DNA of 64,000 nucleotides. It comes from Octopus bimaculoides (lineage: Eukaryota). The notes beneath the pieces were generated by a model. The model was not told the DNA's origin and made no database searches. It saw only the letters and a program-made list of their open reading frames with translations. Location: assembly GCF_001194135.2 (NCBI RefSeq), contig NC_068982.1, positions 123,220,977-123,284,976 on the forward strand, read 5' to 3'. Made by a program: the position numbers and the translations under genes. This document shows, in pieces, positions 5,869 to 63,649 of the stretch; position 1 is the stretch's first letter, and each line of letters begins with the position of its first letter.

Positions 5869-7066
5869 CAGGGGTTGGACAAAATAATGGAAACACCTTT
5901 AAATTTCAAACAAATTTATTTTAATATTGGGTAGGACCACCTTTGGCAGTAATTACAACTTTAATTCTACAAGGTATGGACTCGTACTCCTCGAAACAAA
6001 GGAATTTTTGTCTGTTCTTCAGCTAAAACAATCTCCAGTTCTTGTAGTGATGATGGAGGATATCGACTCCTTACTTGTTTTCTTAAAATGCACCATAAAT
6101 GTTCAATGATATTGAGATCTGGGGACTGTGGTCACCAGATAAGATGTTCAACTTCACTAGAATGTGCCATTCAGTAACAACTTTAGCTGTGTGAAGTGGT
6201 GCATTATCATCCTGAAAGATTGGGGTTCCCTCTGGAAACAGTTCTGCAACCATAGGATGAATTTGATCAGATAAAATGCTTAAATAGTTTTGACTATTAA
6301 TTCTGCTATGAAGGGAAACCGTTGAGCTAACGGATTTCCANNNNNNNNNNNNNNNNNNNNNNNNNNNNNNNNNNNNNNNNNNNNNNNNNNNNNNNNNNNN
6401 NNNNNNNNNNNNNNNNNNNNNNNNNNNNNNNNNNNNNNNNNNNNNNNNNNNNNNNNNNNNNNNNNNNNNNNNNNNNNNNNNNNNNNNNNNNNNNNNNNNN
6501 NNNNNNNNNNNNNNNNNNNNNNNNNNNNNNNNNNNNNNNNNNNNNNNNNNNNNNNNNNNNNNNNNNNNNNNNNNNNNNNNNNNNNNNNNNNNNNNNNNNN
6601 NNNNNNNNNNNNNNNNNNNNNNNNNNNNNNNNNNNNNNNNTTGGAAGCTGTACTTTTGTGATCCTTTCTAACAATTCGCGTAAGAGTCCAACGGTCCCTA
6701 TCTGAAGTTTCGGTTTTCTTCTGGAGTTTTGTTTCAACGAGGAGGATTTTCTCTCATTCTCAAAGGCTGTCATTGCTTCTTGATACACCAAACATTTCAG
6801 CTATTTTCATTGTTCTCGTGCCTGCCATATGCACACCAACAATTTGGCCTCTTTGAAAGACAGATAGATCTGTCATTTTAATGAATTTTAATTGCCGTTT
6901 TCTGATGATATCTAAAAAGAAACAGCAATTTTAGCAAAACATATTAAGCAATACTAATAATAAATAAAAAAACATAAAAATAAACAAGCTTTTGATGGTT
7001 TGATAGATATTTCAAAATTATGATGCTATGATGCTAGGTGTTTCCCATTATTTTGTCCAACCTCTG
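5869..7066 (-). mobile_element. Tc1-family DNA transposon, decayed, spanning an N gap
   Basis: About 30-bp TIRs: CAGGGGTTGGACAAAATAATGGAAACACCT (5869) and AGGTGTTTCCCATTATTTTGTCCAACCTCTG (to 7066) followed by TA. Minus-strand remnant AMTAFENERKSSSLKQNSRRKPKL resembles the N-terminal Tc1 GRKPKL region; frameshifted. Confidence 0.85.
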
Positions 7067-14341: not shown

Positions 14342-14611
<270 letters not shown>

Positions 14612-25217: not shown

Positions 25218-25864
25218 ATTCTACATAAAATATAAACTTACATATGCCATTGGTCTCTTTATCTCATCCTATACGCACGCACGCACACACACACACACAC
25301 ACACACTTACTTGTGAAAGCTGCAAAAATTATCGCAGAACTGTTACTCAGTTTCACATCCCTATTCATTGGACAGTTGTGATGAAAACCAAATTCAGTTT
25401 TCATCACAACTGTCTGGCAAATGGGAACATGAAACTCTGAGTAATAGTTCTGTGATAATTTTTGCAGCTTTAGTAAAAAGAACATTACTCTACCTTTGAT
25501 ATTCAAGTACTATTTTTTCCACCTTGTTTGCACTTATGCGCTCACCTGTATGTGTGTGTTTAGTTAAGAAAAATGGCTGATGCATACTGTAAAGTAGCTA
25601 AAAGGAAGTTAAACCTGATCTAAAGGAATTAGGACAAATATATCAAATTAAGCAAATATGACTGGATAGAAATTAAGGAACTACAAGTAGTGTGTGTAGA
25701 AACATCAATGTGATACTGATTAACATGGATGAACTTCAAAGAAAAAGTTATCTCAGAAATGCAGTATTTCAAGTTAGCTGTTTGTGGTTTTTAAATTTTT
25801 TTTTCATTATACCTGTTTCATGAGTATTGATAATATTCATTTATTAGTATTTCTTCATGTATTT

Positions 25865-25870
25865 CTGTAT

Positions 25871-25909
<39 letters not shown>
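25865..25909. repeat. (TTTA)n microsatellite abutting the RTE 5' truncation point
   Basis: Direct reading. Confidence 0.95.
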
Positions 25910-25910
25910 T

Positions 25911-27751
25911 GTTTCAAATTGTTGGATCAGATGATGAAAGTCATGGAGAGAGTCGTAGCCCAACTAATTAGGGAAAGAGTTAGTTTAGATGCAGTTTGGG
26001 TTTGTGCCAGGGAGAAACACCGCTGATGTTATATTTCTGGTAAGACAGCTGCAGGAAAAATTCCTAGCCAAAGATCTATGCTTGGCTGTTGTTGACATGG
26101 AGAAAGCTTTGACAGGGTCCTCTGTTCCCTTATTTGGTGGACAATGCGGATAGATGAGTGGTTGGTGATAGCTGTACATGCCATGTACAGGGATGCTGTC
26201 AGTGAGGTGAGGGTTAGCAACAAGTGTAGCATAGAATTCCAGATAGAAGTAGGGGTTAGGATCAGTCCTCAGCCCCCTCTTATTCATCATAGTCCTCCAG
26301 GCAATAACAAAGGAATTCAAGACAGGCTGCCTCTGGGATCTCCTTTATGGTGATAACCTTGCTCTAATAACTGAGTCACTACCAGAACTAGAGAAGAAAT
26401 TTCAGGTGTGGAAGCAAGCTCTAGAATCGAAGGGCCTTAGAGTTAACCTAACAAAAACCAAAGTCTTAATAAGTAGGAAGGCGGACAAATCACAAATCCC
26501 TTTAGATAGATGGCCCTGCTCAATCTGTTGAAAAGGCATAGGTAGAAACTCCATAGGATGTACCCGATGTAAGCTATGGACACATAAGAGGTACAGCAAT
26601 ATCAAAGAATGGTTAACTGGGAAGATAGTTTTTGTGCATGGCAGATGTACAGGTGCAATAAACACCAAAGATGTACAGAAAAGATTCCATCACATGCCAA
26701 AGGGAAAAACTAGAAGTGGTTGATAGCTTCCGTTACCTAGGTGACCAAGTCAGCAGCAAGGGTGGATGTTCTGAGAGCGTAGCTGCTAGAATAAGAATAG
26801 CTTGGGCAAGGTTCAGAGAGCTATCTCTGCTGATAATAAAGGGCCTCTCACTCAGAGTGAAAGGTCAATTGTATGATGCGTGTGTGTGAACAGCCATGCT
26901 ACATGGCAGTGAAATAGGGGCTGTGACTGCTGAGGACATGCGAAGGCTTGAAATAAATGAAGCAAGTATGCTCTGCTGGATGTATAATGTCAGTATGCAT
27001 ACACAACAGCATGTAAGTGCCCCGAGAGAAAAGTTGGACATAAGAATCATCAGATATGGTAAGAGAGATGACTGCGCAGGTATGGTCATGGGTAGGGTAT
27101 GGACGAGGACAGCTGTGTGAAGAAGTGTCACACCCTAATAGTGGAGGGAACCTGTGGAAGAGGTAGACCCAAGAAGACATGGGATGAGGTGGTGAGGCAT
27201 GACCTTTGAATGTTGGGCCTCACACAGGCAATGACAAGTGACTGAGACTTTTGGAGATATGCTGTGCTTGAGAAAACCTGGCAAGCCGAGTGAGATCGTA
27301 GTTGTGGTCAATGTTAGTGTCACATAACTGGCCTGTTTAAGAGCACCTGTTTTCGTTGGGCAATATGCTGTGCTTCTAAAGACCTGTAAAACCGAGTGAA
27401 ATCATAGTTGTGGCTGGTGCCAGTGGCACGTAAAAGGCACCATTCAAGCATGGTCAGTGCCATTGCTGCCTAACTGGCACCCATGTTGGTGGCAAGTAAA
27501 AAGCACCATTCAAGCGTGGCTGATACCAGTGCTGCCTGACTGGCTTCCATGCCGCTGGCACATAAAATGCACCTACTACACTCTCGGAGTGGTTGGCATT
27601 AAGAAGAACATCCAGTTGTAGAAACCTTGCCAAATCAGATTGGAACCTGGTGCAACCTCCTGAATTGCCAGTGCTCAGTCAAACCGTCCAACCCTTGCCA
27701 GCATGGAAAACGGACATTAAACAGATGTTAAACGATGATGATGATGATGAT
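25911..27751 (+). mobile_element. 5'-truncated RTE-clade LINE, degenerate reverse transcriptase plus 3' UTR
   Basis: Frameshifted RT pieces: MKVMERVVAQLIRERV, VDMEKA, WLVIAVHAMYRDAVSEVRV, LLYGDNL (YADD-equivalent), KLEVVDSFRYLGD, ARIRIAWARFREL, GRGRPKKTWDEVV. Ends in a (GAT)n tail. Confidence 0.92.
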
Positions 27752-29231: not shown

Positions 29232-30180
29232 CTGGGCAAAGTTCAGGAACTCCTACCTCTGCTGGCAACTAAGGGCCTCTTGCTCAGGATAAAAGGTAGA
29301 CTGTATGATGCATGCATCCAAACTGTCATGCTACACATGGGCCATGACTGCTGAGGACATGTGTAGGCTTGATAGAAATGAAGCTAGTATGATCCGCTGG
29401 ATGTGTAATGTCAGTGTGCACACACAACAGAGTGTAAGCACCCTGAGAGAAAAGTTGGGCATAAGAAGCATCAAATGTGGTGTGCAAGAGAGATAACTGC
29501 GCTAGTATGGTCATGTGTTACAAATGGATGAGGACAGCTATGTGAGGAAGTGCCACTCCCTAACTGTGGAGAGAATCTGTGGAAGAGGTAAGACCCAGGA
29601 AAACATGGGATGAGGTGGTGAATCATGACCTTCGAATGTTGGGCCTCACAGAGGCAATGACAAGAGACCGAGACCTTTGGAGATGTGGTGTGATTGAGAA
29701 GACCCAGCAACTGAGATCGCAGCCATGGCCGATGCCAGTGTTGCATGCCTGGCCCATTTAAGTGTACCCTTGATGCATTGGGTGATATGATATGCTTGCT
29801 TGAGAAAACTTGTTGAGTCAAGTAAAACCAAAATCATAGCTGTGGCCAGTGCCCCCTGATTGGCTCCTGTTCCAGTGGCATGTAAAAAGCATCATCCAAA
29901 TGTGGTTGATGCCAGTGTCCCCTGACTGGCTCCCATGGCAGTGGCATGTAAAAAGCACCATCTGAACGTGGCCAATGCCAGGGCTACCTAACTGGCTCCT
30001 GTGGCAGTGGCACGTAAAAAGTACCCACTATTCTCTCGGAGTGGTTGGCGTTAGGAAGAGTATCCAGCAGTAGAAGCATTGGAACATGGTGCAGCCGCTG
30101 GCTTTCCAGACTGCAGTCAAACCGTCCAACCCATGCCAGCATGGAAAACCGACATTAAAAGATGATGATGATGACGATGA
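29232..30180 (+). mobile_element. 5'-truncated RTE LINE copy (ORF2 C-terminus plus 3' UTR)
   Basis: Homologous to 26805-27750 (AMTAEDMCRLDRNEASMIRWMCNV...RPRKTWDEVVNHDLRMLGLTEAMTRDRDLWR). Three 66-bp units at 29845, 29911 and 29977, then a GAT tail. Confidence 0.9.
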
Positions 30181-30542: not shown

Positions 30543-30697
30543 GGAAAAACTTCCTCAGTCAGTTACATTTTCAGCAGACTTGAGAGCTGACCATGGCATT
30601 GAAAATAAAGTGGACAGTAGTGAAGGAAGCCTTGCTTCGAACAGTAGTGGTTTTGGTAGTTTACCCAGAAAAGACAAACCGAACATTGCTCCACTTG
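30543..30697 (+). CDS. FAM102A: EEIG1/FAM102A-family protein, internal exon
   Basis: Acceptor tgtgtttttcag|G and donor CTTG|gtaaga. The phase-2 start completes GT+G=Val. Encodes EKLPQSVTF...SSEGSLASNSSGFGSLPRKDKPNIAPL. 155 nt, ends in phase 1. Confidence 0.85.
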
Positions 30698-31363: not shown

Positions 31364-31532
31364 AGGTTCCTCCTATTTTAACTGATCCAGAAGGAGCCCG
31401 TGATGTCGATTTTGAGAAGAGCCATTCCCGAAATTCTAGCTATGCTAGTCAACATTCGCGAGGTTCCGGATATGGATCTCTTGGTCATAGTCGGCAGTCA
31501 AGTTTAAGTAATGATATTCACGGACATACTAG
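31364..31532 (+). CDS. FAM102A: EEIG1/FAM102A-family protein, internal exon (Ser-rich HSRNSS region)
   Basis: Poly-T/gtactttcag|AG acceptor and ACTAG|gtaagc donor. G+AG=Glu. Contains SHSRNSSYASQHSRGSGY, matching the family motif GHSRNSSYASQQS..SGY. 169 nt, ends in phase 2. Confidence 0.92.
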
Positions 31533-33767
31533 GTAAGCTGAAGATAGTTTTCATTTTTATTTCTTAAGTAAGCTTTCCAACCAACTGTAACAAATGTATA
31601 GATAACTTCCAGTATTAAAACTAAAGGAAAAAATTGTAATAATTACCTTAATTTTATAGAAAAATATTATTCTGGGAATAGTTAAATTTGGAAAAGAGAC
31701 ATTTTAATTTTTTTATAAAATATTTTTTTATTTTGTGTTGATTAAGAAAATGATTAATTCATAATTAGACATCACTTCTATTTATGCATTTCTTCTGTAC
31801 TGAGCTGTATCATGATATCATGATATCTCAAAGACTATGCTCATTATTATCCTGGTTATTAATCACAGTCTTACATTCATCTGCATTTGAAGAATGTGCA
31901 GGATACCTAAATTTTCATCCCACAGGTAAACCCAGTAATGATTATTGTATTGTGTTTTTAGATAGAACACAATCTTAATTGGTTCAATACATCTTGTAAA
32001 ATATAAGAAGCTTTCATGGTTGAATGATTAAAAAAGACATTCTGCTATAAAAAAAATAAGATAAAAATTAAAGGAAAATTTGATTCATCAGCTCCAGATT
32101 TTCAGAATCCTCTTATCTATGCTAACCTGAGTCAGCTCCATCTGAGCAGATGAGTAATAATCATAGAGATGACTGGTGTTTCTAACTGTAGATATTCCAG
32201 TGTAATCATACTGATATAACATTTAGGAGTAACTCCTAAGCATAACTTAACTTTAAATATGACTAACAGCTGTCTGTCATATTGAACAAGTTGGGCTGTT
32301 AAATTGTAGTACTTTTGTTAGCCTCAGTCAAAGGAAAATGTAGATTGACATGAAATTTTACTGCCGGCCATTTTAACTCAAACCAGAATGTAATGACATC
32401 AATAATGGAGTGTTTAATTTTCTGTCGTTTCTTCTTTTGACATTTGTACATTATGTCTTTAGATTGATCTTGAAACTTTATACTTTTGTTACAACAATAA
32501 TCGGTCAGAAACATTTGTTTTTTTTTAAATTTTGAGATAATTGTGCTCCATAATTGTTTTCTATTAATCAACTTCATTTACTTAATATAAACCTTTGTTT
32601 ACTATTAATTAACTATCATAGAGACATCTCTATAGCTTTTAAAGTCAATGTGTACAATAAACTATATATACTTAATGTTTATTTTTAATGTAGGATATGG
32701 TCATGTCATTGAACTCTTATTCAGTTAAAGCTTCTTAATTGTCACGTAATAACATTTTAGTGATACAACCAAACATAAAAAGAAAAATATTACTTGCTTA
32801 AATACTTAATTTATATTCAGGTGATTTTCACAAACACCTCCACAAAATTTTCCTCTGTATTTGATGTTATTTATGATTATTGGACAAGAATAGGTTTTAT
32901 CATTTTCCATAATTTTTAGAGATTAATTTTATGAGTTTTGTTTGAAGTGGGAATTTAGGGTGGTTTTTTTATATTATTTTTTTTCTGTTTTCAAATTTAC
33001 CTTTATCTATTAAAAGTTTGACTTTTTATGAAATAAAAATTATATTTTAAACAAAGCCAATCTTACTACATTACTGACATAAATCATTTTCTACAGATAT
33101 TTTTAATGATTTCTCAAATTGAGTTGTATACCAAACAGTGTCATATTCTGTTCTCATCATATCTACTTGTATTTATGTTAAGCCTTAACCTTTAGCACAC
33201 TGCCTTTTCTTTAGAATCATTTCCCCTGCCACTGCCTTGTTACTACAGGGAAGAAAACTCACCCGGTAACATGATACACCTACAGCGTGCTAAAGGTTAA
33301 ACTTCTTCATATTTGTTTGGTATACATTGAAAACATTTGGTATATAGATGTAGAAACCTAGTTAAAGATTAATGAGTTGATATAAAGATAAATGTTTAAC
33401 TTTATCTATTACCTTCTGAACTTGGATAATCAATCATTCCAACCTTAGACTGTCAGTATATATCTCAGTAGAATATCTTCTGTCAAGTATCCTGGTGAGC
33501 TCTTCATGCATTGCTGATCAATTTACTTAATAGATATTTTCACAAGTAAATATAATATAAACAGCTTGTATTTATCTCACATTATCTTTTTTGTTCTTCA
33601 TCTTAAATTGTTTGTATTATGATTTAAAAAAAAAATTTTATTAATCATTTAAAAATATTTCCCTTCTATGTAATTATATTTCCTTCCATATGAGAGCATT
33701 TTCATAATTTTAATTCCTTCAGCTTTCACAAAATCATGTTTTCTCTTTTTCCATTTTTATCTGTCAG

Positions 33768-33779
33768 ATTGTATGTCAG
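33768..33779 (+). CDS. Candidate 12-nt microexon of the FAM102-family gene (inserts LYVR)
   Basis: About 30-nt pyrimidine tract gttttctctttttccatttttatctgtcag|ATTGTATGTCAG|gtatgt. Symmetric phase 2, no stop codon. Splice-signal evidence only. Confidence 0.5.
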
Positions 33780-34138
33780 GTATGTAATGCTCATTTTCAT
33801 TTGGTGTTCTGCAAAAATGTTCATGAAAGTGTATATTTAATTTCACCCTGCCCCCATCTGAATGGTACTTGTCTCCAATATGCATTTGAATTAAACATGT
33901 TTAGTGAGATTTTGTTAACAAATGATATTACTTTGCAAAGTGATAAATAACCATTAAATTATCAGGATTGACTTTCATACTTGATGTGCATACTTGATAT
34001 CTTCACTCTAGCAGAATATATAGTGATAACTTCATATTGCACAGCTAGATCATAGCTACTAACCAATATTTCAGCAGAACATACCTATGTGTACTTTAAA
34101 GTACACTAAAATAAATTTTGTTTTTTTTAACTCTGTAG

Positions 34139-34162: not shown

Positions 34163-37100
34163 GTAGTAATTACTAGGTAAGTTAAACAGTTAGTTAAACA
34201 AATGGAAGCCAATGACAAGTTCTCTTATATTCTTGAAGTCAGTTTTATGTTAGCTAAGGTTTTAATGTAGTACTATTTGAGTACTGTAATATTTAAAAGG
34301 CAAATAAATAAACACATCTTTAATAATTAAAATATTATGAGAAAAGTGACAGCTCAAAGTGAGTGTATGTGAAAGGTATAAGTATTTAAATAATGCTAAA
34401 AGTATTTTTACATGTGTATTGTATGGTAAGTTTGCCTTAGAACAATGTAGACACCAGTCTACAGCTGAATATATCATATTTATGTATACTGTATCATATA
34501 CCTGTGAAAACAAATTTTGACAGCAAAGATATAATCAGTAGAAAACACAATAGGAAGCTCACTTTTTTTCAAGGCATTAGTTTGTTACTAAATGGCTATA
34601 AAGTAATTTCAGAAAGTGTTACAGCAAGTTTGAATAAGAAATGCTCTTCATATGATGAGAATGATGATGCTGTTCATCAGATCCTAAATACTGACAAACC
34701 TCTTTTCCTTCTGTTTACTTGTGAGTACTTATGTAATAATCAGATTAATCCTGATGAAACATATTTGAACCTTGTGATTAATAAGGACAACAGTGGTGAG
34801 GTAGTGGTTCAAATAAGTGAGAAAGCTAGAGAAAGATATCTGTCTGTCACACATTGAAGACTGTTAGTGTATTATTTCATGACGAAAGATTTTTTTCATC
34901 ATTGTGTTTATATATTTAAACATAAAAAGAAAATATCTACCTACTGGTGCCAAGTATATGAAAAGGATTGTATCATTCCCCTTGCTTTGAACTTTGTATT
35001 ACTCTATTATCACACTTTGATTATAAACTCGTCAAAGACAATGATGAAATTTATAAGACGGTGCATTTTAGTAAATTTTATTGACATCACTAAGATTTTA
35101 AAATAGAAATTTCATAATCACAACATGGTACTTAAAATTAAGTTGTTTGATGTATGAAAAGACAGTAAATAAGTTACTAACAGCTGTACGATTCAGTGGA
35201 AATAAATAAATGTGATAACATTAAAGGAATGTTAAGAGGCATATCTTAGACTAAACAAATATTATCAAGGACAAAATAGTCATTAAATAATGTCTATATA
35301 CTAGAGGAAATTAGAGTGGGAGAGAAAGGGAGAGAGATGAATAACGCAGTTAATTTCCCTCTCTTTTATGGTGACATGGTAAAAAAATGAAACAGAAATG
35401 CTTTATTCTAAAATAGCTTGCAATAGATTTGTATTGGATATGTCACCATAAAACTGTAAGCTTTGTGTGAAGCTGTCTGCAGTGTTTCCCTTGTTGCAGT
35501 TGGTTGCATCAGATAAAGTCTGCTGAATTTTGTCTTGTGTTTAGCTTGTTACATCTGCAATGTGAGAACTGTCATTTTCATAATCACCTATTTTAAAAGA
35601 GGCAATCTGTTTGGTGTATACAGTAGGAAAAGAAATCAATCTAGTTTTCATATAAATGTCTGAGATAGCTATGTGTTTGATTCAGTACATCTTTACTAGG
35701 AGTATGGAAATAAAATCACCCAAAGTTATATTGTTAAAATTGTTTATCCACTGAAGTTTAGCTGTTGTTTCTTATGAATTACATTTTAATTTCTTAATAT
35801 TGAATCATTAGTGAAGTATCCAACTTGGAAAAACCTTTTGTTGTTTTGTTAGTCAATAAGAAACTTTTACATAAATGGCTCAAGAGCTTTAAAAAAAAAA
35901 GGTGCTTCTCCTTTTAGAAAGTTAACAATAAAAGAATATTTGAATTATCTTCACATGAGGTTTCATTCTATTTGAAATTTAATAAATCAATCTTTCCCCT
36001 TAACCCATTGATTGTTAAATCAGTGTCTTTTCGGGAAATATTGTTAAGCAATTAATTAGCAATACTTAGTAAAAAAAAAAGTAAATAAAATCAGCACTAA
36101 CAATTTTAGAAAGGCATGCCAATTTCTTTATCAACAACTTATTAGGTACACGTTTCTCCAATAACCTATTTAACTTTTGAGCATTAGGCAACTATCTTCC
36201 TTAGTTTCCCTGCTAGGTACATTTGTTTTGTCCTCTTTTTTGTCTGTGCAAACTATTTCTACCTATTTTACTGTATAAACAGCTTCGCACTGTCATTGTT
36301 TTTCAGTCTCATAATCCATTAACATAGATTTTTCATGGTTATAATTGTGAATTTTTATTAGTATATAACTACGCAATACTTTTGCTCTATATTTTTATTC
36401 TGGACAATGTTTTCCCCTGTGATTACTCTCTGATGATATGAGTTATAGGTTATATATTATCATTAGTTTAAACTCTTGCAACGATGTCACTTACTGTGCA
36501 TTTGCCTTGTGAATGAATCCTAGAGTTCTATTGTATAATTGTTTACCTATTCTCACCTTAATTTTAGTTAAAATTTGTGCTTTATATGTATTTGTTGTTT
36601 TTTCATTGTTAGAATAAACAAAAAACAAACATTAGTTTTTGTTTCATATCTTTGAGTTGTTTGAAAATATTGAAGTCCCCTATGAAAATATTGATTAAAA
36701 ATTGTCAATTACCTTTCATGATCAGAGACATCCATTAATGGGTAATTAGACCCTTTAATTTTAGTGGAATAATTGAAACTGCAACGCTCATTATCTTTAT
36801 CAAAGCAAAATCAGAGAACTTGTAAGAATCAGAAACAGAACTTAGCTTGCAGACTTTTATGATCTCACCACCTGTTCTATTGTATCTATGTCAGAATTTG
36901 ACCACTTATGATGCAGTACTTTGTTTGTCATGAATATACCACCAATGATATTGTATTTGCTTTGACAGGATTTTATAAAATATGATTTCAGTACTTGGTT
37001 TGTCAAGATCTTATCACTTATATGGTACCTATGTCTGAACTATGTCATACATATATAGTACCTATGCTATGGTACTTGAGCCAGGATCCCACTTATGATA

Positions 37101-39389
37101 TGGTATTTTCCACTTCCATTTAAAAAGAAACATTATAGATGATTATTTTAAGCTGCTTTGTCATTTGGAGTTCATTAAAATTTGGTGTGTAGTAGAGTTA
37201 AATAGATTTACTAAATTTTCTAATGATGTCTTCTAACATTTCTATAAATGACTTGAACTCATCTTGAAACCGACTCCATACTCTAGTATGCTGCCTACAA
37301 TCTGTAATATTTTACAACATTTACGTTTATAAAGTGACTTTATTTGTTTTTAAGTTTGGAAGTAAAGTTGATGATAGTGTAGGAACTGAATTTGAATTTA
37401 GGAAATATGCATATATTTATTTTAGAATTTTGTGAAGCAGAATTGTACATACATTAATTACCTTGTTTTAAGGCTTTAGAAACTCTGAAACTATAAATGA
37501 TTTCTATAGTTGGTGTAAGGCTCTTTTTGTAGGATGGGATGCTAATTTTGAGTTCATTAGTTCTTCTATATATTAATGGTATTCCTTTAAGTATCTCTGA
37601 ATGTATGAAGAGTAAAACTATTATGACAAGATTAGAGCTCAAATAGACATGGTTTCATAACATATCTAGCACAATTTTTACCTGCTCCATCTTTCTCATT
37701 AAAAGATAAGGTATAATAGCAATGATTTAGATTTCTTATTGTCAATTTAATAAATATAACTTTATATTATGATTTTTAATACTTATATTCACCAAAGAGT
37801 TAAATATTCATATTTTGTATGTTTGCACAATAGCATGATATTTATTTTTCACATATGAATAAAAAATAGATAAGTATATTAGTATGGTAAGTCTTTCTTT
37901 TGGCCTATTGTGTTAAGCATTACACCTAAGTTTGCTTGTGGGTTTTGTAGTTTAGATCTTTACTGACATATGCAGAATTTCAAAAGAAGTAATTGCTCTC
38001 ACTGCACTATACATATCTGTCAATATATGCTGTAAGTGTTAAGGCCATCAGTCAATTTCATGATAAAATTCAGTGTTAATATTGTAAACCACCAAATGAA
38101 TTACTTATCAACTTTCAAGTCAACATAGGGCTGTCCATTACTCATATATCTTTCTTTTTCTTGTAATGTGATTTAGACTCAGTAGCATAGCTTCGGCNNN
38201 NNNNNNNTCCACACTGTATATAACATCAGGGACTCAAAAGAATATCACAACTTTTCACTGAGAAAGTTACTCAATAGTTATGGCCCTTTCTAAAGTAAGA
38301 GGTAAAATTTAAAATATGTTGAAGTCAGTTGCATGCAAACAGAAATAATCCCAGTGTACTTGTAATGGTTGATATACGAGCAGAGTTCCTGGTAATTAAG
38401 TTATCAATTAGATCAAACTGAAAAACTTGAAATTTTGTGGCATCTTTGCAGCCAAAGATTTTATTTTTCCTTTTTGCTTTGCTGCACAAGCTGAAGCTGT
38501 GAAAATTTTGAATGGTTAATGAATTCAGCATTAGGTTCTCAACAAAAGAAGAGAGTAGAGAAAGAGGTAGAAGGGAAATGCCTTAAAATTTTAAAAAGGA
38601 AAAATTTGCAATAACCCATGTATTTCCTAATTTACAATAGCCAAATTATGTTAATTTTTTTCTTGTATTTGCTTTATTTATAGACATCTGAAAGCTATTG
38701 ATAACTTATGCTGTACATGAAACATTAGTCTTTTTATTTAAAGGGTTACTTCATTCACATGCAGTTTATTAGGAGTGCATTTTTGCAAGGATGATTATTG
38801 AAACAAAGTTTCATGTTATTACAAAAGCAGTGTTAGATATATGATTATCTAAGATTCTAGAACCCTCTCTCCTTTCACCTCATGCAGATAAAGCCTTTGC
38901 TTTTTTTTACTAAAGATATTTATGATTATATAGCAATCACAATGTTATTATGCAAGATGCATGAATTTTTAGGTGCAGAGCCTTTCACATGAAAAGAATA
39001 AATAAAGCAGTGCAAACCTAAAAGGATTGTATTAGTAGATGAGTGCATGTGTTAGAATTGCACTGACCTACTATATGGTCAACTGCATGAAAATCACTTA
39101 AGGCAGTGGAATAGTGTTTGCCTAAAGTCCTATTGTATAAATAGTCAAAAGTTCTTTGAGATTTACTGAATATTTTATTCTTAAAGTTTTGAGATGCATT
39201 GTTTATTTTTATTATATTTGAGATCAATTATATTTCTATTTATCTTTCATTTATACATGCATAAATTCACACACACACACACACACACGTGTGTGTGCAC
39301 GCGTGCGTATGTGCGTGTGCATCAGTTTTTTAAGGACACCCCTCCCATGAGCTCTAGCTGTTGACAGGGGTCCAGTGTCAGAAGCTAAA

Positions 39390-40275
39390 TGCAAAATATA
39401 TGCACACGCTCCTAATACTATCAGAACACATAGTATTGTACAAAAAGTCTAAGAAATAATCAATAAAATCCCTGGAAAGTCAATCAAGGACATTGGAGAG
39501 GACCTTGAGGTTTCAGAATGCACCACCTGAAGAGTTGTGCATGAGAACATCCAGTACAAGTCATATATGATGTGGAGGAGTCAGTTTGTGTTAGGTGTAA
39601 TGAGAGAGAATTGTTCAATCTGTGTGAAGTGCTTGCTAAACAAGTTAAAACCCAAAGAAGTTAGAATGCTTTGGTTTTTACTCCTATGAAAAAAAAAAAA
39701 AAAAAAAAATTTGATAAAAAGCAGAAGATAAACTGAAGGAACTTCAGATGGTTATGCAGAGACCCAAATGAGGTTCCAACGGTCATGTGCATTAAGTTCC
39801 CAGCAACTGTGATGGTTATGGGAGTCATCAGTAATGAGGGAGATGACATGCCTCCTCACTCTTTCCCACAGGGCTGAAGAGTCAATGCTGCTGCCTATAC
39901 ATAGGTATTGAAACTTGTGAAGCCCTGGATAGACAGAGTATACACCGGAACACTGTATGTCTTCCAACAAGACTCTGCGCTATCTCATAAGGCTGGGACA
40001 ATCCACGTGTGGATGCATGCTAATCTCCATGATCATGTTCTCTCAGACACATGGCCTCCTAGCTCGTCAGATCTCAATTCACTGGACTATTACATATGGA
40101 GCATAGACAAGAGAAATGTCAATCAACAACCCCGTGACACCATAGACTCTCTCAAGTCTGCCATAACCAGCATTATGTCCAAAATTGATATAAATCATTT
40201 GATTCGAGCATGTCAGCTCTTCTATACCCATATTGAAGCAGCCGTTGATGCTAACAGTGGATTCATTGAATAGAT
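39390..40275 (+). mobile_element. Decayed maT-like (DD37D) Tc1/mariner transposase
   Basis: ORF 39908-40273 contains YVFQQDSALSHKA...WPPSSSDLNSLDYYIWS, with 37 residues between the QQD aspartate and the LDY aspartate. Upstream frames are broken. TIRs not identified. Confidence 0.8.
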
Positions 40276-40898
40276 AGGATAAAAAGCTTCTCAAGATATT
40301 GTACCAACTTGTTTTCAAATACGGCTTTCCTTTGATGAGCTATGCATCTTTTTTTTTTTTAATTCATAGACATAAGATCAAAAAAACTGATGCACCCTCT
40401 GTGTGCGTGTATGTGTTGTATGAGTGTATGTATGAGTATGTGTGTGTGTGTGTGTGTGTGTATGCATGTGTATATGTGCATGTGTGTGCGTGTGTATGTA
40501 TAATTATGATTGTGTGAGTTTGTAATAACACACACAATCATATATGCAAATGTATGTATATATGTTTATATGACCTGCTAAGCTATCATTGAACTGTTTG
40601 ATGAGGGCTTAGTAGGCTAAAACTTTGTTTTTACTATAACAGCATAAAAACAAAATATATGTATGTATATAAATATATATATATANNNNNNNNNNNNNNN
40701 NNNNNNNNNNNNNNNNNNNNNNNNNNNNNNNNNNNNNNNNNNNNNNNNNNNNNNNNNNNNNNNNNNNNNNNNNNNNNNNNNNNNNNNNNNNNNNNNNNNN
40801 NNNNNNNNNNNNNNNNNNNNNNNNNNNNNNNNNNNNNNNNNNNNNNNNNNNNNNNNNNNNNNNNNNNNNNNNNNNNNNNNNNNNNNNNNNNNNNNNNN

Positions 40899-40937
<39 letters not shown>

Positions 40938-41925: not shown

Positions 41926-41984
<59 letters not shown>

Positions 41985-42519
41985 NNNNNNNNNNNNNNNN
42001 NNNNNNNNNNNNNNNNNNNNNNNNNNNNNNNNNNNNNNNNNNNNNNNNNNNNNNNNNNNNNNNNNNNNNNNNNNNNNNNNNNNNNNNNNNNNNNNNNNNN
42101 NNNNNNNNNNNNNNNNNNNNNNNNNNNNNNNNNNNNNNNNNNNNNNNNNNNNNNNNNNNNNNNNNNNNNNNNNNNNNNNNNNNNNNNNNNNNNNNNNNNN
42201 NNNNNNNNNNNNNNNNNNNNNNNNNNNNNNNNNNNNNNNNNNNNNNNNNNNNNNNNNNNNNNNNNNNNNNNNNNNNNNNNNNNNNNNNNNNNNNNNNNNN
42301 NNNNNNNNNNNNNNNNNNTCTCTCTCTCTCTCTCTCTCTCTTATATCTATACATATAAATTTGACATGGGTGGTTCTTTCTTGTCTTGGGATTCATGGTC
42401 AAACGGCTGGGTGAAATTGCGTGAAAAATTACACAGATGTGTAGAATGATCTGGTGGTGATGCTGGGCTTTGTATTTTTTCATATTTTTTCATAGCTACC
42501 ATGGTTACCAAAATAATCA

Positions 42520-44270: not shown

Positions 44271-45770
44271 CCGTGTTTCCTAGAAAATAAGACCTAGCAT
44301 AATTTTTCAGGATGGTTTTAATGTAAGCCCTTCCCTTAAAATAAGCTTTAGTTGAGAGCAGCAGACAGATGAAAGAAATAAGCAACCTCTTCATATTGAT
44401 TCAAACTATGGTGTATACACTGTTCAAAATATCTTTTTGGTGGCTAAGAAAACGTCACAAAATCTATCCTGGTGTCTCTTTTGTAGCTCAAATATTAAGA
44501 AGTTCTACTTCAATTGACAGCCCATGTTTGGAGCTTTCAAATGTACACATTTTCTTTCAAGGCAAAAATCTCCTAGAAAACAACATGATGAAATTGAATG
44601 AGAAATCATTTGTCAGGTCATTTTCTCCCCAAGACAAGATGAGTGCCAAAAGAAAGAGTTATTCCATCGAGTACAAGAAAGGAATCGTGGAGGAATCACT
44701 GGGCAAGAACCTTGCTGTTTTCTGTAAAGAAAAGAATTTAGATCTCCGAATGGTTCGAAAATGGCGAGTAGACTACAATAAATTCAGTCAACAATGCAGA
44801 GAACAATGCAGAGAAACACAAGTGTGGATCAGGTCAGCAACCACTATTTTCTGATCTGGAAGACGTCATCTTTGAATGGGTTGCTGACAGGAGAGCAAAG
44901 GCTTTGGTTGTTTGCAGGACTGATATTCCAGCATTTGCCCTTGCAAATTTACCACAGTTTGGTATATTTCCAGAAGAATTCAAAGCATCACAACACTGGC
45001 TGGATGGTTTCCTTCAGCAATATGAACTTTCTGAGAAGGCCGGCAACACTGTTCAAACTGGAAGATACGGAGATTATTAAATGTGCACTTGCATTTAAGT
45101 CCTTTGTTGATGGAATAGATTTTTCTAAACACCATCTCTCAAACATGATTGCTATAGATGAAACTGCAGTTTCCATGGGCCAAGGATCTCAACTGACAAT
45201 TGATCAAAGGGGTGTGTCATCAATCTATATTCCCTCCATTGGTTACAAAAGTGCATGAGTTACATGTATTTTGGCAATTCATCTTGATGAAAGTAAAACC
45301 CCACTTCTAATCATCACTAAAAGTAGGCAGGATAAAATTGAACACATTTCAGGTATCTGTGTTCTGGAAACTGAAAAGGCAACATTGTTGAGTCAAGTCT
45401 TTGAGAGAACTATTCAAATTTGTTTGAAAGGAAGATGAATTTTCTCAAAGAAACAGAAAAATTCTTGTTAACAATGAATTGGAGTTCATCACAAATGAAA
45501 TTCTTGTCAGAACTGAAGATGATATACAAAAATAAGAGCTTGGAAACTGGTTGGCTATTGAGAATAAAGTTGAAGTGGAGCCTACAATGATAGTGTTAGA
45601 AATAAGCTGGGCTGTTATGTATCTACATTCTAAATTAGAAGAGAGTGAGCCAAATCCAGAAGTTTTAGAAGTTCGTCATGAGTGGGATTTTTAAAGCAAT
45701 ATGAGTATGAACAATTTATAAATGAACTACTAAATGTGTACATTAGGATGGATAAGTTGTTTTCTTTTTT
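44271..45770 (+). mobile_element. pogo/Tigger-type transposon, 3'-truncated, frameshifted transposase
   Basis: Left end TA-CCGTGTTTCCTAGAAAATAAGACC. ATG at 44639 gives MSAKRKSYSIEYKKGIV..LDLRMVRKWR (psq-like HTH). Then LEDVIFEWV..FKASQHWLDGFL (CENP-B-type HTH) and NMIAIDETAV (first catalytic D of DDE_1). No right TIR seen. Confidence 0.85.
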
Positions 45771-50010: not shown

Positions 50011-50065
50011 AAGTCCGAGTGCAGGATCTGCTTTGAACGATTCAGGAAAAATAGAAAGAAGACGT
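50011..50065 (+). CDS. FAM102A: EEIG1/FAM102A-family protein, short internal exon
   Basis: Acceptor ttcttttattattcag|A and donor CGT|gtaagt. AG+A=Arg, then SPSAGSALNDSGKIERRR. 55 nt, phase 2 to phase 0, matching both neighbours. Confidence 0.8.
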
Positions 50066-51516
50066 GTAAGTATCTGGAAATATTTATGTGAGCATATTTT
50101 ATGAATATATTCTTTTGATTTTGACATGTGTAAAATCCTTTATAGAAACAAGCCTGTAAATGAAACATCTATTTGAGAGTTGGGTTGAAATAATTATAAA
50201 TATTTACCAAAGCAATGTAATTGAATGGAATAACAATTATTTCTTTCATCAACATGTAGCTTAGATGGAGACAACTGTTTTGGTCTTTGTAATATTTAGG
50301 TGTCTGTAAAGAAGTCACCCTGACGTCAGACATTTTTATGTAGAGAAGAGGAAATGGATAAACAAACTGCTCCAAATTCAAATTCAATTTGAGAGAATGT
50401 CAAATTCAGGAATAAGTTCTATGATGATTAGATCGATGTGTTGTATGAATAGAAATGCAAAAGATGAGACATAATGAAATAATCTAATTATTGTGATAAT
50501 TCATTTCAGAAGATCAGATACATAACTGTTGCATTGCATTTATCAGTCAAATGGTGATGTTAATGGTATTTGACTAACCTCCTCCTTTCAAAATTGCTTG
50601 TCTTTGGTGACAATCAGAAACAATTCTTTTGTTGCACATTAAATCTTTGTAAATACATTACTCTTTGATCAATATGTATATTATTATTTGGAGCGTATAT
50701 TTGTATATGTTTTAGCATTTTATTTTAACAATTTTGTAATTTTAAAACGTTATTTTAGACCGCTTTATAGTTAGACTATTTATAGCACGCAAATTTTTTA
50801 AATGTATTGTTAAAGGGGGATAACTCTAAAGCTACTAAATATAGGGGAGATAATTTATGCAGTTTTGAAAATATTGACATTTCGTTTCGATCATCTTTTT
50901 CCTTTCCTTTCTCTTAATCTTTTTAACTTTCTGGATCAGAGAGAGAAAGAGAAGAAAACGTTTTTTTTTTTATGACTACAAGAAATGTTGATACTGTTGA
51001 ATTCTATTTTAATCATCGTGTAATTTTGTCGAGTCTTTCTAAACTGTGATAAAGAGGCTGCTCTTTTTATGAATGCATGTTGTAATTGTTTTATTATCGA
51101 TACTGGTCTGTGAAAAAAACAAAAACAAAAACAAAATCCTGTTTTATCTGATTGCATACTAAACGGTATGCTACTTTGTACGTCCAATATGTTCTAAATT
51201 AAGCTTTTAGCTATACAGACGATGCTTGCTCTATGTGATTTAGAAAGTATGGAAGCATCTCTTTAACCTAAGTCAGCATAAAATAAATCTTAAACCATGA
51301 TAAATCATTGCTTTTCAAATACTTTTTGTGTTAGAAACCGGGTAGTTTATTAGCAGTAATTGTTTAGTACATATTTTGAGGGGAATTTGGTAAGTTTAAT
51401 TATTATTGAGTAAAAAAAAAAAAAAGCAGGTTGATATAATAGTAATTGTTGTCATTGAAATATATTGTATGAGAATTTATTAAATTCATAAAAAAGTTTT
51501 TTTTTTTTTTGTTTAG

Positions 51517-51628
51517 AAACTTGAAGACCCAATTGAACGTCGAGTAGATTCAACAAGAGTTGATGCTGAAGACCTTGTAGAAGAACTTATAAAAGGAACA
51601 GATCTACGCCTTGATGACAGTGAAGAAC
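51517..51628 (+). CDS. FAM102A: EEIG1/FAM102A-family protein, internal exon
   Basis: Poly-T gtttag|AAA acceptor and GAAC|gtaaga donor. Encodes KLEDPIERRVDSTRVDAEDLVEELIKGTDLRLDDSEE, matching the family C-terminal motif (W/R)VD.TR.DA...V..I. Not in the supplied ORF track. 112 nt, ends in phase 1. Confidence 0.9.
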
Positions 51629-53850: not shown

Positions 53851-53903
53851 GATCTGGGCTTCAATTGTTTATCGATACAGATGGAAAGACTGCCTTGCGT
53901 TGA
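53851..53903 (+). CDS. FAM102A: EEIG1/FAM102A-family protein, last coding exon
   Basis: Acceptor atttctctcttttcag|GA. C+GA=Arg, then SGLQLFIDTDGKTALR and TGA at 53901-53903. Matches the family motif S.L.LF(V/I)..DG..(T/A)L. Confidence 0.88.
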
Positions 53904-56577: not shown

Positions 56578-57236
56578 NNNNNNNNNNNNNNNNNNNNNNN
56601 NNNNNNNNNNNNNNNNNNNNNNNNNNNNNNNNNNNNNNNNNNNNNNNNNNNNNNNNNNNNNNNNNNNNNNNNNNNNNNNNNNNNNNNNNNNNNNNNNNNN
56701 NNNNNNNNNNNNNNNNNNNNNNNNNNNNNNNNNNNNNNNNNNNNNNNNNNNNNNNNNNNNNNNNNNNNNNNNNNNNNNNNNNNNNNNNNNNNNNNNNNNN
56801 NNNNNNNNNNNNNNNNNNNNNNNNNNNNNNNNNNNNNNNNNNNNNNNNNNNNNNNNNNNNNNNNNNNNNNNNNNNNNNNNNNNNNNNNNNNNNNNNNNNN
56901 NNNNNNNNNNNNNNNNNNNNNNNNNNNNNNNNNNNNNNNNNNNNNNNNNNNNNNNNNNNNNNNNNNNNNNNNNNNNNNNNNNNNNNNNNNNNNNNNNNNN
57001 NNNNNNNNNNNNNNNNNNNNNNNNNNNNNNNNNNNNNNNNNNNNNNNNNNNNNNNNNNNNNNNNNNNNNNNNNNNNNNNNNNNNNNNNNNNNNNNNNNNN
57101 NNNNNNNNNNNNNNNNNNNNNNNNNNNNNNNNNNNNNNNNNNNNNNNNNNNNNNNNNNNNNNNNNNNNNNNNNNNNNNNNNNNNNNNNNNNNNNNNNNNN
57201 NNNNNNNNNNNNNNNNNNNNNNNNNNNNNNNNNNNN
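56578..57236. other. Assembly gap (largest of eight)
   Basis: N runs also at about 6341-6640, 25070-25079, 38198-38207, 40687-40898, 41115-41124, 41985-42318 and 62948-63123, mostly inside microsatellites. Confidence 0.99.
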
Positions 57237-58790
57237 ATATATATATATATATAAGGCAAATAAGAAAATGGAAAGGATATAAAAATCAACAAACATCAGC
57301 CAGTAAACATTCCATTATATCTATTTATTAAATGATAACAAACATGTGTTTAAGTGGTACAAGTACTACGCATGGGAGTATTGGGATTAGTTTTTGGCCA
57401 ATAAGTTACAAATATTAACACCGCACTAAAGTTTTACCCAGTTTTTCTTTCATTAATGTACTTGTGTATTAATTTTCCCCAAACAGGTTCGATTTAAGTT
57501 ATTTCAGCCAACTCCTTTAATATTGCTGTATCCATTAAATAGCGTTTAGCCTCTAACCTCTGACCCCTGTAGCATGGACCATACCATTAAACTTACCACA
57601 AAGCATACTACCTTCACTATTTCTCTCAGTATAATAGAAATACAATGTAAACCGTAGTCTGCAGATATATCTCCTGAGAGTGTCTTTTTTTTACTTACCA
57701 CACAATGGAATACTATGGATTATAATAACACCTTAAAATGAAGTTCTTACTTTTCCTTACTATGTCTATTACATTACATTATTTTTTATTTTGACCTATT
57801 TTAGTCTATCTTATTTACCCTACTCTATTATTCTAACTGAATTACCCACCTGTTAGTTTCCTAACATTTGTACTCTCTGAAGAAGCCTTGAGGCTCAACT
57901 ACTACCCAATCTCTGTCCAATGTTTATTCATCCCTGTATATCACTGATGCGATGAGGATGACTTGGAAGATTCTGAGGCCTCATGGTAGAAACGGCCATA
58001 AATGATTTGTATCTGTATACTCATCTATTATTATTCATTCATCTCTCTCTATATATATCCGTTTACGTATTTATTGGCTGATCTCATTCGTTTACTTGTA
58101 CCACTTAACCACTTGTTTGTTATCATTTAATAAGTAGATATAATGGAGTGTTTACAGGCTGATGTTTGTCAATTTTATATCCTCTCCATTTTCTTATTTG
58201 CCTCATAAATCCTGGGAAAATTTCCAATTTACCCCCACCCATACCTAGTATTCAATTGCGATATTGCCAAGCAATAGTAAGCACTTGGTTAAAAATACGT
58301 AGCTACACATCCAGTAGCACACTGGATATTTAATATCCCTTAGATGGTTTATTAACCTCTAACTCATACAGACACATATATATATATGTATGTGTGTGTG
58401 TGTGTGTGTATGTTTTGAAGTTTTATGGACAGAAGTGCACATAAAGTGCATGTACTGGTCTAAGAATGTGTGCACAAGGGCTACAAATCTGTTACGCTAT
58501 TTTAAGTATTCAAGCCAGTTTTTGTCATACTGACTGAATAAACCTCACAACTAAATACCTTCAGTAACTATATAAAAAGGAAACGAAATATGAAAATAAT
58601 CTTTGAAAGTTGATTTCTGGTTTAGTTTAATTTGTTCTGTTCTTGTTAATTCAATTCGATTTTTTTTTTTTTTTTAATGAAGAACCTATATTTTTTAGAC
58701 ATAAGGATATGTAACTGACACTTAAAGTGAGAGAAAAGGAGAATTAAATGACATTGTTTTGGTTATATAAGCTTGTCCTTATAGAAATTG

Positions 58791-62830: not shown

Positions 62831-63649
62831 ATTTATTATTTTTTTCTTTTACTTGCTTGCTTTTATCATTTTGCTAATTGCTAAACAATATATTGCTAAC
62901 AAAAGAAGAAAAAAGCTGTATTAAATATATACATATATATATATATANNNNNNNNNNNNNNNNNNNNNNNNNNNNNNNNNNNNNNNNNNNNNNNNNNNNN
63001 NNNNNNNNNNNNNNNNNNNNNNNNNNNNNNNNNNNNNNNNNNNNNNNNNNNNNNNNNNNNNNNNNNNNNNNNNNNNNNNNNNNNNNNNNNNNNNNNNNNN
63101 NNNNNNNNNNNNNNNNNNNNNNNTTTTTTTTTTTTTTTTTTTTGGTTTCTTGAAAAAATTTATTAAAGAAAAATTTAATTGAAAATTGGTGGATATTTAA
63201 AAATTAATACGAAAATAAATGAGTAAGTAGGAGAAGCAAGTGATAGTTGGGTATCATTTACTCTACTTATTAGCATGCTAACCATCCTCATCTCCAATGA
63301 ATACTTGTAATGAAGATGTTAATTATCTCTAATTACCAATCTAATTTTGCCCACATATGCTGACATTATATACTTATTGGATAATAATTATAATTTATTT
63401 GCTAAAAATAATTTGCAAATTATTCCTTCATTTTTGCCAAAAGCAAAGAAAAAAAGTGAAAAAAAAAAAATTGAAGAGAGGATCAGAATATTTTTTAATA
63501 AAAGTCATGTATTTATTTTGTGACATTTTTTTTTTTTTTAATGTAATTTTCTACCATGGAAGTACGTAAGCAATGATTTCGGACATGGAGCTCTGGTTCA
63601 TATCAGTGAGATCCATGAATGATGGTTTCTGTCTACCATGGAAATGTGT

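Follow-up and report, generated by a model that had tools for sequence, protein, structure and literature searches.

In targets of the eMIC splicing programme, strong branch points and an extended AG exclusion zone go with a long pyrimidine tract rich in UCUC and a UGC motif that lies near the 3′ splice site (PMC8797185). Their enhancer is bipartite (UCUCUC...UGC), with the UGC lying between branch point and AG in 74–79% of human SRRM3/4-dependent microexons and absent from that interval in 21–26% of them; the motif is important, yet not strictly required (10.1101/2024.09.17.613571). In human FAM102A and FAM102B, a C2 domain at the N terminus recognises PI(4,5)P2 in the plasma membrane, and the C-terminal region is disordered and includes a conserved sequence to which a helical hairpin of the lipid-transfer protein BLTP2 binds (PMC12406788).

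We investigated a candidate microexon in a FAM102 gene of Octopus bimaculoides, located within a 64,000-nucleotide stretch of contig NC_068982.1 (the window; all coordinates below refer to it unless another locus is named). We are highly confident that positions 33768–33779 form a true microexon of octopus FAM102A/EEIG1, a 12-nt cassette that is alternatively spliced. The microexon is already known; starting from raw sequence, we arrived again at an isoform that had been annotated.

The FAM102A locus and its annotated isoforms

The window encodes, on the + strand, six constitutive coding exons and the microexon, with the first 90 residues of the protein encoded elsewhere. Translated together, the window exons including the microexon are 100% identical to residues 91–338 (248 residues) of XP_029655417.1. 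The first (14420–14610, +), located by tblastn, encodes the C-terminal part of the NT-C2 domain (...DPVFK) and scores 27.7 bits against Pfam PF10358 (cut-off 25.2) on the window-encoded part of the domain; all full-length relatives carry PF10358. The second (30543–30697, +; EKLPQSVTF...NIAPL) begins the disordered region, and was delimited, like the exons at 50011–50065 and 51517–51628, by splice sites and the match to XP_029655417.1. The upstream flanking exon (31364–31532, +) holds three of four HSR-type repeats plus GHT(R), and ends in phase 2 (..CAT ACT AG|) at a donor scoring 10.0 (TAG|gtaagc). The downstream flanking exon (50011–50065, +) starts A|AGT CCG and encodes (R)SPSAGSALNDSGKIERRR; it is followed by an exon for the conserved C-terminal segment, KLEDPIERRVDSTRVDAEDLVEELIKGTDL... 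(51517–51628, +), and by the last coding exon (53851–53903, +), which matches XP_029655417.1 and reads ..SGLQLFIDTDGKTALR before a TGA stop. Of the six constitutive exons, the five that end in a donor all use GTAAG. By sequence homology, the gene is a member of the FAM102/EEIG family and an orthologue of the named FAM102A proteins.

The FAM102A gene spans 113–209 kb in O. bimaculoides, O. vulgaris and Argonauta hians. Several ORFs within its introns, judged by eye from the ORF list, resemble decayed transposable elements (about 6083–6253(−), 25784–27131, 29305–29821, 39908–40273(+) and 44369–45258(+)); some look like transposase or reverse-transcriptase fragments, and one pair of ORFs is HTH/DDE-like. 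The window also contains assembly gaps and abundant (TG)n/(TA)n-type microsatellites, for example at about 6400–6700, 40690–40930, 41960–42300, 56580–57240 and 62950–63130.

The microexon, ATTGTATGTCAG (33768–33779, +), lies in a phase-2 intron of 18.5 kb, 2.2 kb downstream of one flanking exon and 16.2 kb upstream of the other. Its polypyrimidine tract (33739–33765, +; ttttctctttttcc a ttttt a tct g tc) has a UCUCU and an uninterrupted run of 14 pyrimidines, with no UGC, and runs into a CAG whose AG at 33766–33767 (+) is the acceptor; the donor GTATGT follows at 33780–33785 (+; CAG|GTATGT). Read between its neighbours, AG|ATTGTATGTCAG|A translates as R-L-Y-V-R: the 12 nt, a multiple of three and stop-free in frame, add L-Y-V-R and restore the split Arg codon. 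Exons 31364–31532 and 50011–50065 joined directly give GHTR-SPS, and with the microexon GHTR-LYVR-SPS; the corresponding mRNA junctions are CATACTAG|AAGTCCG for skipping and CATACTAG|ATTGTATGTCAG|AAGTCCG for inclusion. A first-pass annotation of this DNA had proposed exactly these coordinates, with the CAG acceptor and the CAG|GTATGT donor, and had predicted retention of the AG|A split codon and the GHTR-LYVR-SPS peptide without frameshift or stop; inspection of the window sequence and its translation bore this out. The repeats it named (SHSRNSS, QHSRGSG, GHSRQSS and GHTRSPS) are all present in the translated exons. The microexon donor falls within a near-duplicated motif, GTATGTCAG-GTATGTAAT (33771–33785). 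A 3-nt exon, ATT, formed through the inner GT (in frame, R-L-S) was rejected on a donor score of just 2.0 and the lack of any recorded isoform.

A protein search with the 231-aa window protein including LYVR, followed by examination of the 90% cluster of the octopus entry that it returned, revealed that RefSeq models contain both forms. Isoform X1 with GHTRLYVRSPS is recorded for O. sinensis (XP_029655417.1, 338 aa; P0267) and O. bimaculoides (XP_014772840.1; P0270), and isoform X2 without LYVR for the same two species (XP_029655423.1 and XP_014772851.1, respectively; the latter P0271); the returned entry (P0153), 334 aa with GHTRSPS, is named protein FAM102A in O. bimaculoides and isoform X2 in O. 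sinensis. Between an AG and a GT, R-LYV-R can be encoded solely at 33768–33779 (whole intron scanned, apart from a small part falling in one of the several assembly gaps that account for the window's 1712 N). With LYVR present in RefSeq X1 and a single encoding site in the intron, the microexon is therefore real and already annotated. Accordingly, the proposal of a real, frame-preserving 12-nt microexon in the FAM102/EEIG1 gene holds, the exact peptide occurring in X1 of two Octopus species; its accompanying suggestion, that standard annotation misses the exon, is wrong, as NCBI RefSeq includes it (XP_029655417.1, XP_014772840.1). Its cassette nature is supported by its position, as it adjoins neither flanking exon and is the sole encoding site.

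The Octopus evidence for inclusion and skipping consists of these RefSeq model pairs; the collection we searched contained no de novo Octopus transcript with LYVR. A shorter 78-aa query (upstream exon, microexon and downstream exon) returned two distant genomic ORFs and no cephalopods, and the longer query with the NT-C2 exon retrieved cephalopods. Exact look-ups of the window ORFs near the microexon gave no matches, and a metagenome scan for YAGATTGTATGTCAGGTRNGT gave two, both unrelated chance matches. The case indicates that a reader of raw sequence alone can correctly call a real 12-nt exon, and that microexon calls need an isoform-annotation look-up before they are flagged as missed.

Chance expectation, conservation and rival explanations

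We scored splice sites with a generic metazoan matrix; it is neither MaxEntScan nor octopus-trained, and its scores serve solely for ranking. The microexon acceptor (5.1) and donor (9.96) compare with 3.5/10.0 and 3.9/7.4 for the flanking exons. Window-wide, the acceptor falls within the best 1.2% of AGs and the donor within the best 0.4% of GTs, being 14th-best or better of 3721. Among 318 frame-preserving, stop-free AG..GT pairs of 3–27 nt in the 18.5 kb intron, the microexon alone reached the flanking-exon minimum scores. When the frame condition was dropped and any length allowed, no second pair in the 64 kb, on either strand, matched its scores. The region has no repeat or tandem-array character and is single-copy within the window. 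In order-3 Markov simulations of intron-sized sequences (n = 400), one or more such pairs appeared in 1% at the microexon's scores, and in 8% at the minimum scores of exons 31364–31532 and 50011–50065. By our own estimate, these splice statistics taken alone would leave a real exon an unlikely, though hardly negligible, prospect, since hundreds of such pairs should occur by chance across a genome of gigabase scale.

We compared the exon at the transcript level, using Logan de novo contigs from public sequencing runs. Two further protein clusters were 84% and 79% identical to Octopus; their source lineages are probably other cephalopods, since the nearest non-cephalopod mollusc reaches 63%, and probably decapodiforms. 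The first lineage has isoforms GHVR-VYVR-SPS (P0274, P0275) and GHVRSPS (P0154, P0272), and the second GHVR-VHVR-SPS (P0277) and GHVRSPS (P0155). At the nucleotide level, one contig (L005, SRR29271461) reads ..GTCAG|AGTTTATGTCAG|GAGTCC, encoding VYVR, and three others (L006–L008) read ..GTCAG|AGTTCATGTCAG|GAGTCC, encoding VHVR; the skipping form is seen in L009 and L010, from the run series SRR276660xx that also yielded L006 and L007. Across lineages the insert is constantly 12 nt and splits the same Arg codon; it closes with an invariant ATGTCAG (7 nt), which includes a synonymous C at donor position −3. Its identity to the window (10/12 and 9/12 nt) is not below that of the flanking exons (0.68–0.84). 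A neutral 12-mer within an intron should not persist over such divergence; a 12-nt insert with invariant ATGTCAG in two divergent lineages therefore appears to have been kept by selection. Assembled contigs of both forms were recovered in each lineage, 9 with inclusion versus 5–6 with skipping in one, and 3 versus 22 in the other.

These data bear on two other readings of the site. If the annotated X1 were an artefact of automatic gene prediction, the splice-site pair would be a chance pseudo-exon, and such pairs do arise by chance in about 1–8% of equal-size introns, so many are to be expected per large genome. However, the exact peptide appears in RefSeq models of two Octopus species, and transcripts assembled independently de novo in two other lineages have 12 extra nt at this junction, 9–10 of them identical to the octopus exon, which makes this reading highly improbable. 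We give still less credence to CAG|GTATGT at 33777–33785 being a recursive splice site, that is, a zero-length ratchet point through which the 18.5 kb intron would be removed in two steps. There, an AG does abut a strong GT in a long intron, and the regenerated ACTAG|GTATGT would score 7.2 as a donor; but the AG at 33778–33779 scores about 0 as an acceptor, because the tract just upstream contains another AG and purines, and the 12 nt are retained in mature mRNAs.

The same junction in other lophotrochozoans

Inserts at the equivalent junction were found among RefSeq isoforms of other lophotrochozoans. The chiton Liolophura sinensis (XP_064616458.1) has GHT-SHHTNV-SPS versus GHTRSPS (P0278/P0003), and the nemertean Lineus longissimus (XP_064649162.1) GHTR-LQPPP-SPS versus GHTRSPS (P0303/P0173), each a difference of +5 residues and neither insert related in peptide to that of cephalopods. 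The FAM102A-like isoforms X1, X2 and X3 of the scallop Pecten maximus comprise THT-SEYCKR-SPS and THT-RFLNVLYL-SPS forms as well as THTRSPS; Mizuhopecten yessoensis has the same series as Pecten when compared by length alone (342, 340 and 335 aa; P0283/P0282/P0286). At the Pecten locus (L011, LR736839.1), the homologous intron is 4423 nt long and of the same phase as in octopus, and holds two annotated microexons: one of 15 nt, TGAATATTGCAAAAG (36230–36244 of that locus), and one of 21 nt, ATTTTTGAATGTGTTATATTT (37935–37955). Both have TGC 13–16 nt upstream after a CU-rich tract, an eMIC-type layout. A bivalve-like orthologue (L001; ENA ERZ25073293 ctg32653l) matches octopus in intron position and phase (10158/11240 of that contig; ..ACAAG|gtcagt ... 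tag|AAGTCC), and we found no plausible microexon in its 1081-nt homologous intron.

The next junction of the protein (ERRR|K) also shows alternative inserts, of +4 to +23 aa, in Dreissena, Mya, Haliotis, Gigantopelta, Physella and the amphioxus Branchiostoma (P0289, P0294, P0168, P0290, P0311, P0305). In the octopus intron at that junction (50066–51516), no plausible in-frame alternative exon was found.

It is conceivable, though we think it unlikely, that the H-x-R|S-P-S junction is an ancient lophotrochozoan microexon site, and that the cephalopod, scallop, chiton and nemertean inserts descend from one probably neural, eMIC-regulated ancestor, whose position, phase and alternative use persisted as its peptide diverged, with the UGC being lost in cephalopods. 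If true, FAM102/EEIG would be a compact case of microexon regulation being rewired while the exon persists. A recurrent microexon hot spot in Lophotrochozoa is the only part of this analysis that might repay further work.

Regulation, protein context and comparison with known systems

At 12 nt, the exon would be too short for ordinary exon definition, and its inclusion probably depends on the strong donor and on the long pyrimidine tract with its UCUC, together with some trans-acting factor that would make it sample-dependent. Against the tract features described for eMIC targets, the octopus exon shows UCUCU, a 14-nt pyrimidine run and a 43-nt AG-free zone. The first-pass annotation had called this AG-free tract unusually long, which applies to the pure pyrimidine run (top 1.4%) but not to the zone itself, which is just in the top 9% of window AGs and shorter than those of the flanking constitutive exons (78 and 95 nt). 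Its caveat that an upstream UGC is lacking was confirmed, with zero TGC within 120 nt 5′ of the microexon. GCATG was found neither upstream nor downstream.

Inclusion may belong to the neural programme, in which the Srrm234 eMIC domain promotes 3′ splice site recognition and inclusion is mainly neuronal. The 12-nt length, the preserved frame, the strong donor and a position within disordered protein all fit that class, and the long UCUC-containing tract and the moderately long AG-free zone are compatible with it (PMC8797185); both scallop microexons of the homologous intron have the UGC, and inclusion and skipping forms predominate in different runs of one series. The missing UGC does not exclude an eMIC target, because the motif is present in just 74–79% of human targets, and the 21–26% of human SRRM3/4-dependent microexons without it are comparable with the octopus exon in this respect (10.1101/2024.09.17.613571). 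Set against this are the TGC-free 120 nt and the lack of GCATG on either side, an acceptor that is strong rather than weak by the generic matrix, and a literature library in which we found no paper linking FAM102 to microexons. We therefore regard eMIC control as possible but somewhat doubtful, and lean modestly towards regulation outside that programme, or towards intermediate inclusion in many tissues without neural specificity. This second reading accommodates the absent UGC and two splice sites strong enough for partial constitutive recognition, and the contig counts (9 inclusion versus 5–6 skipping, with 3 versus 22 in the other lineage) suggest that inclusion is a common form in at least one lineage; it has to contend with the fact that very short exons usually require a dedicated enhancer.

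The insert lies about 25 residues before the conserved C-terminal segment (RRVDSTRVDAEDLVEELI), within the disordered Ser/Arg-rich region that separates this segment from NT-C2. It ends in V-R in all three lineages, so that a ..VR-SPS context is retained, and it supplies another Arg, plus two or three residues of hydrophobic or aromatic character, upstream of SPS; in the VHVR lineage it effectively duplicates the preceding HVR. The HxRxxS repeats may be basophilic kinase sites, as their motif suggests. Most likely, the insert would alter a kinase or docking motif, or its spacing, beside the probable SPS phosphosite, and not folded structure; any consequence for phosphorylation or BLTP2 binding is a prediction from the peptide. 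Biologically, the microexon amounts to an ordinary annotated isoform difference, mildly interesting for its placement near a probable phosphosite in the linker of a protein that tethers BLTP2 in human cells, and for a junction that hosts unlike short alternative exons in several lophotrochozoan phyla.

Comparison with described systems places the exon as follows. The RefSeq FAM102A X1/X2 pairs of O. sinensis and O. bimaculoides contain the identical exon, X2 being the skipping form, and we found no difference from them. Human FAM102A and FAM102B (EEIG1/EEIG2; plasma-membrane adaptors of BLTP2) resemble the octopus protein in their NT-C2 domain at the N terminus, in a disordered Ser-rich region that has HSRNSSYASQ-type motifs, and in having the conserved C-terminal segment, whereas no microexon at the homologous junction is reported for them in the papers searched. 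Pecten maximus FAM102A-like resembles the octopus gene in intron position and phase (..AG|A), in having short frame-preserving exons and in its skipping isoform, but has two exons of other lengths encoding unrelated peptides, each with a UGC. Finally, as with eMIC (Srrm2/3/4) neural microexons, the octopus exon is a frame-preserving cassette within the 3–27 nt range, with a strong 5′ splice site, a long UCUC tract, a location in a disordered region and conservation within its clade; unlike them, it lacks a UGC in the interval from the likely branch region to the AG, and its acceptor is not weak.
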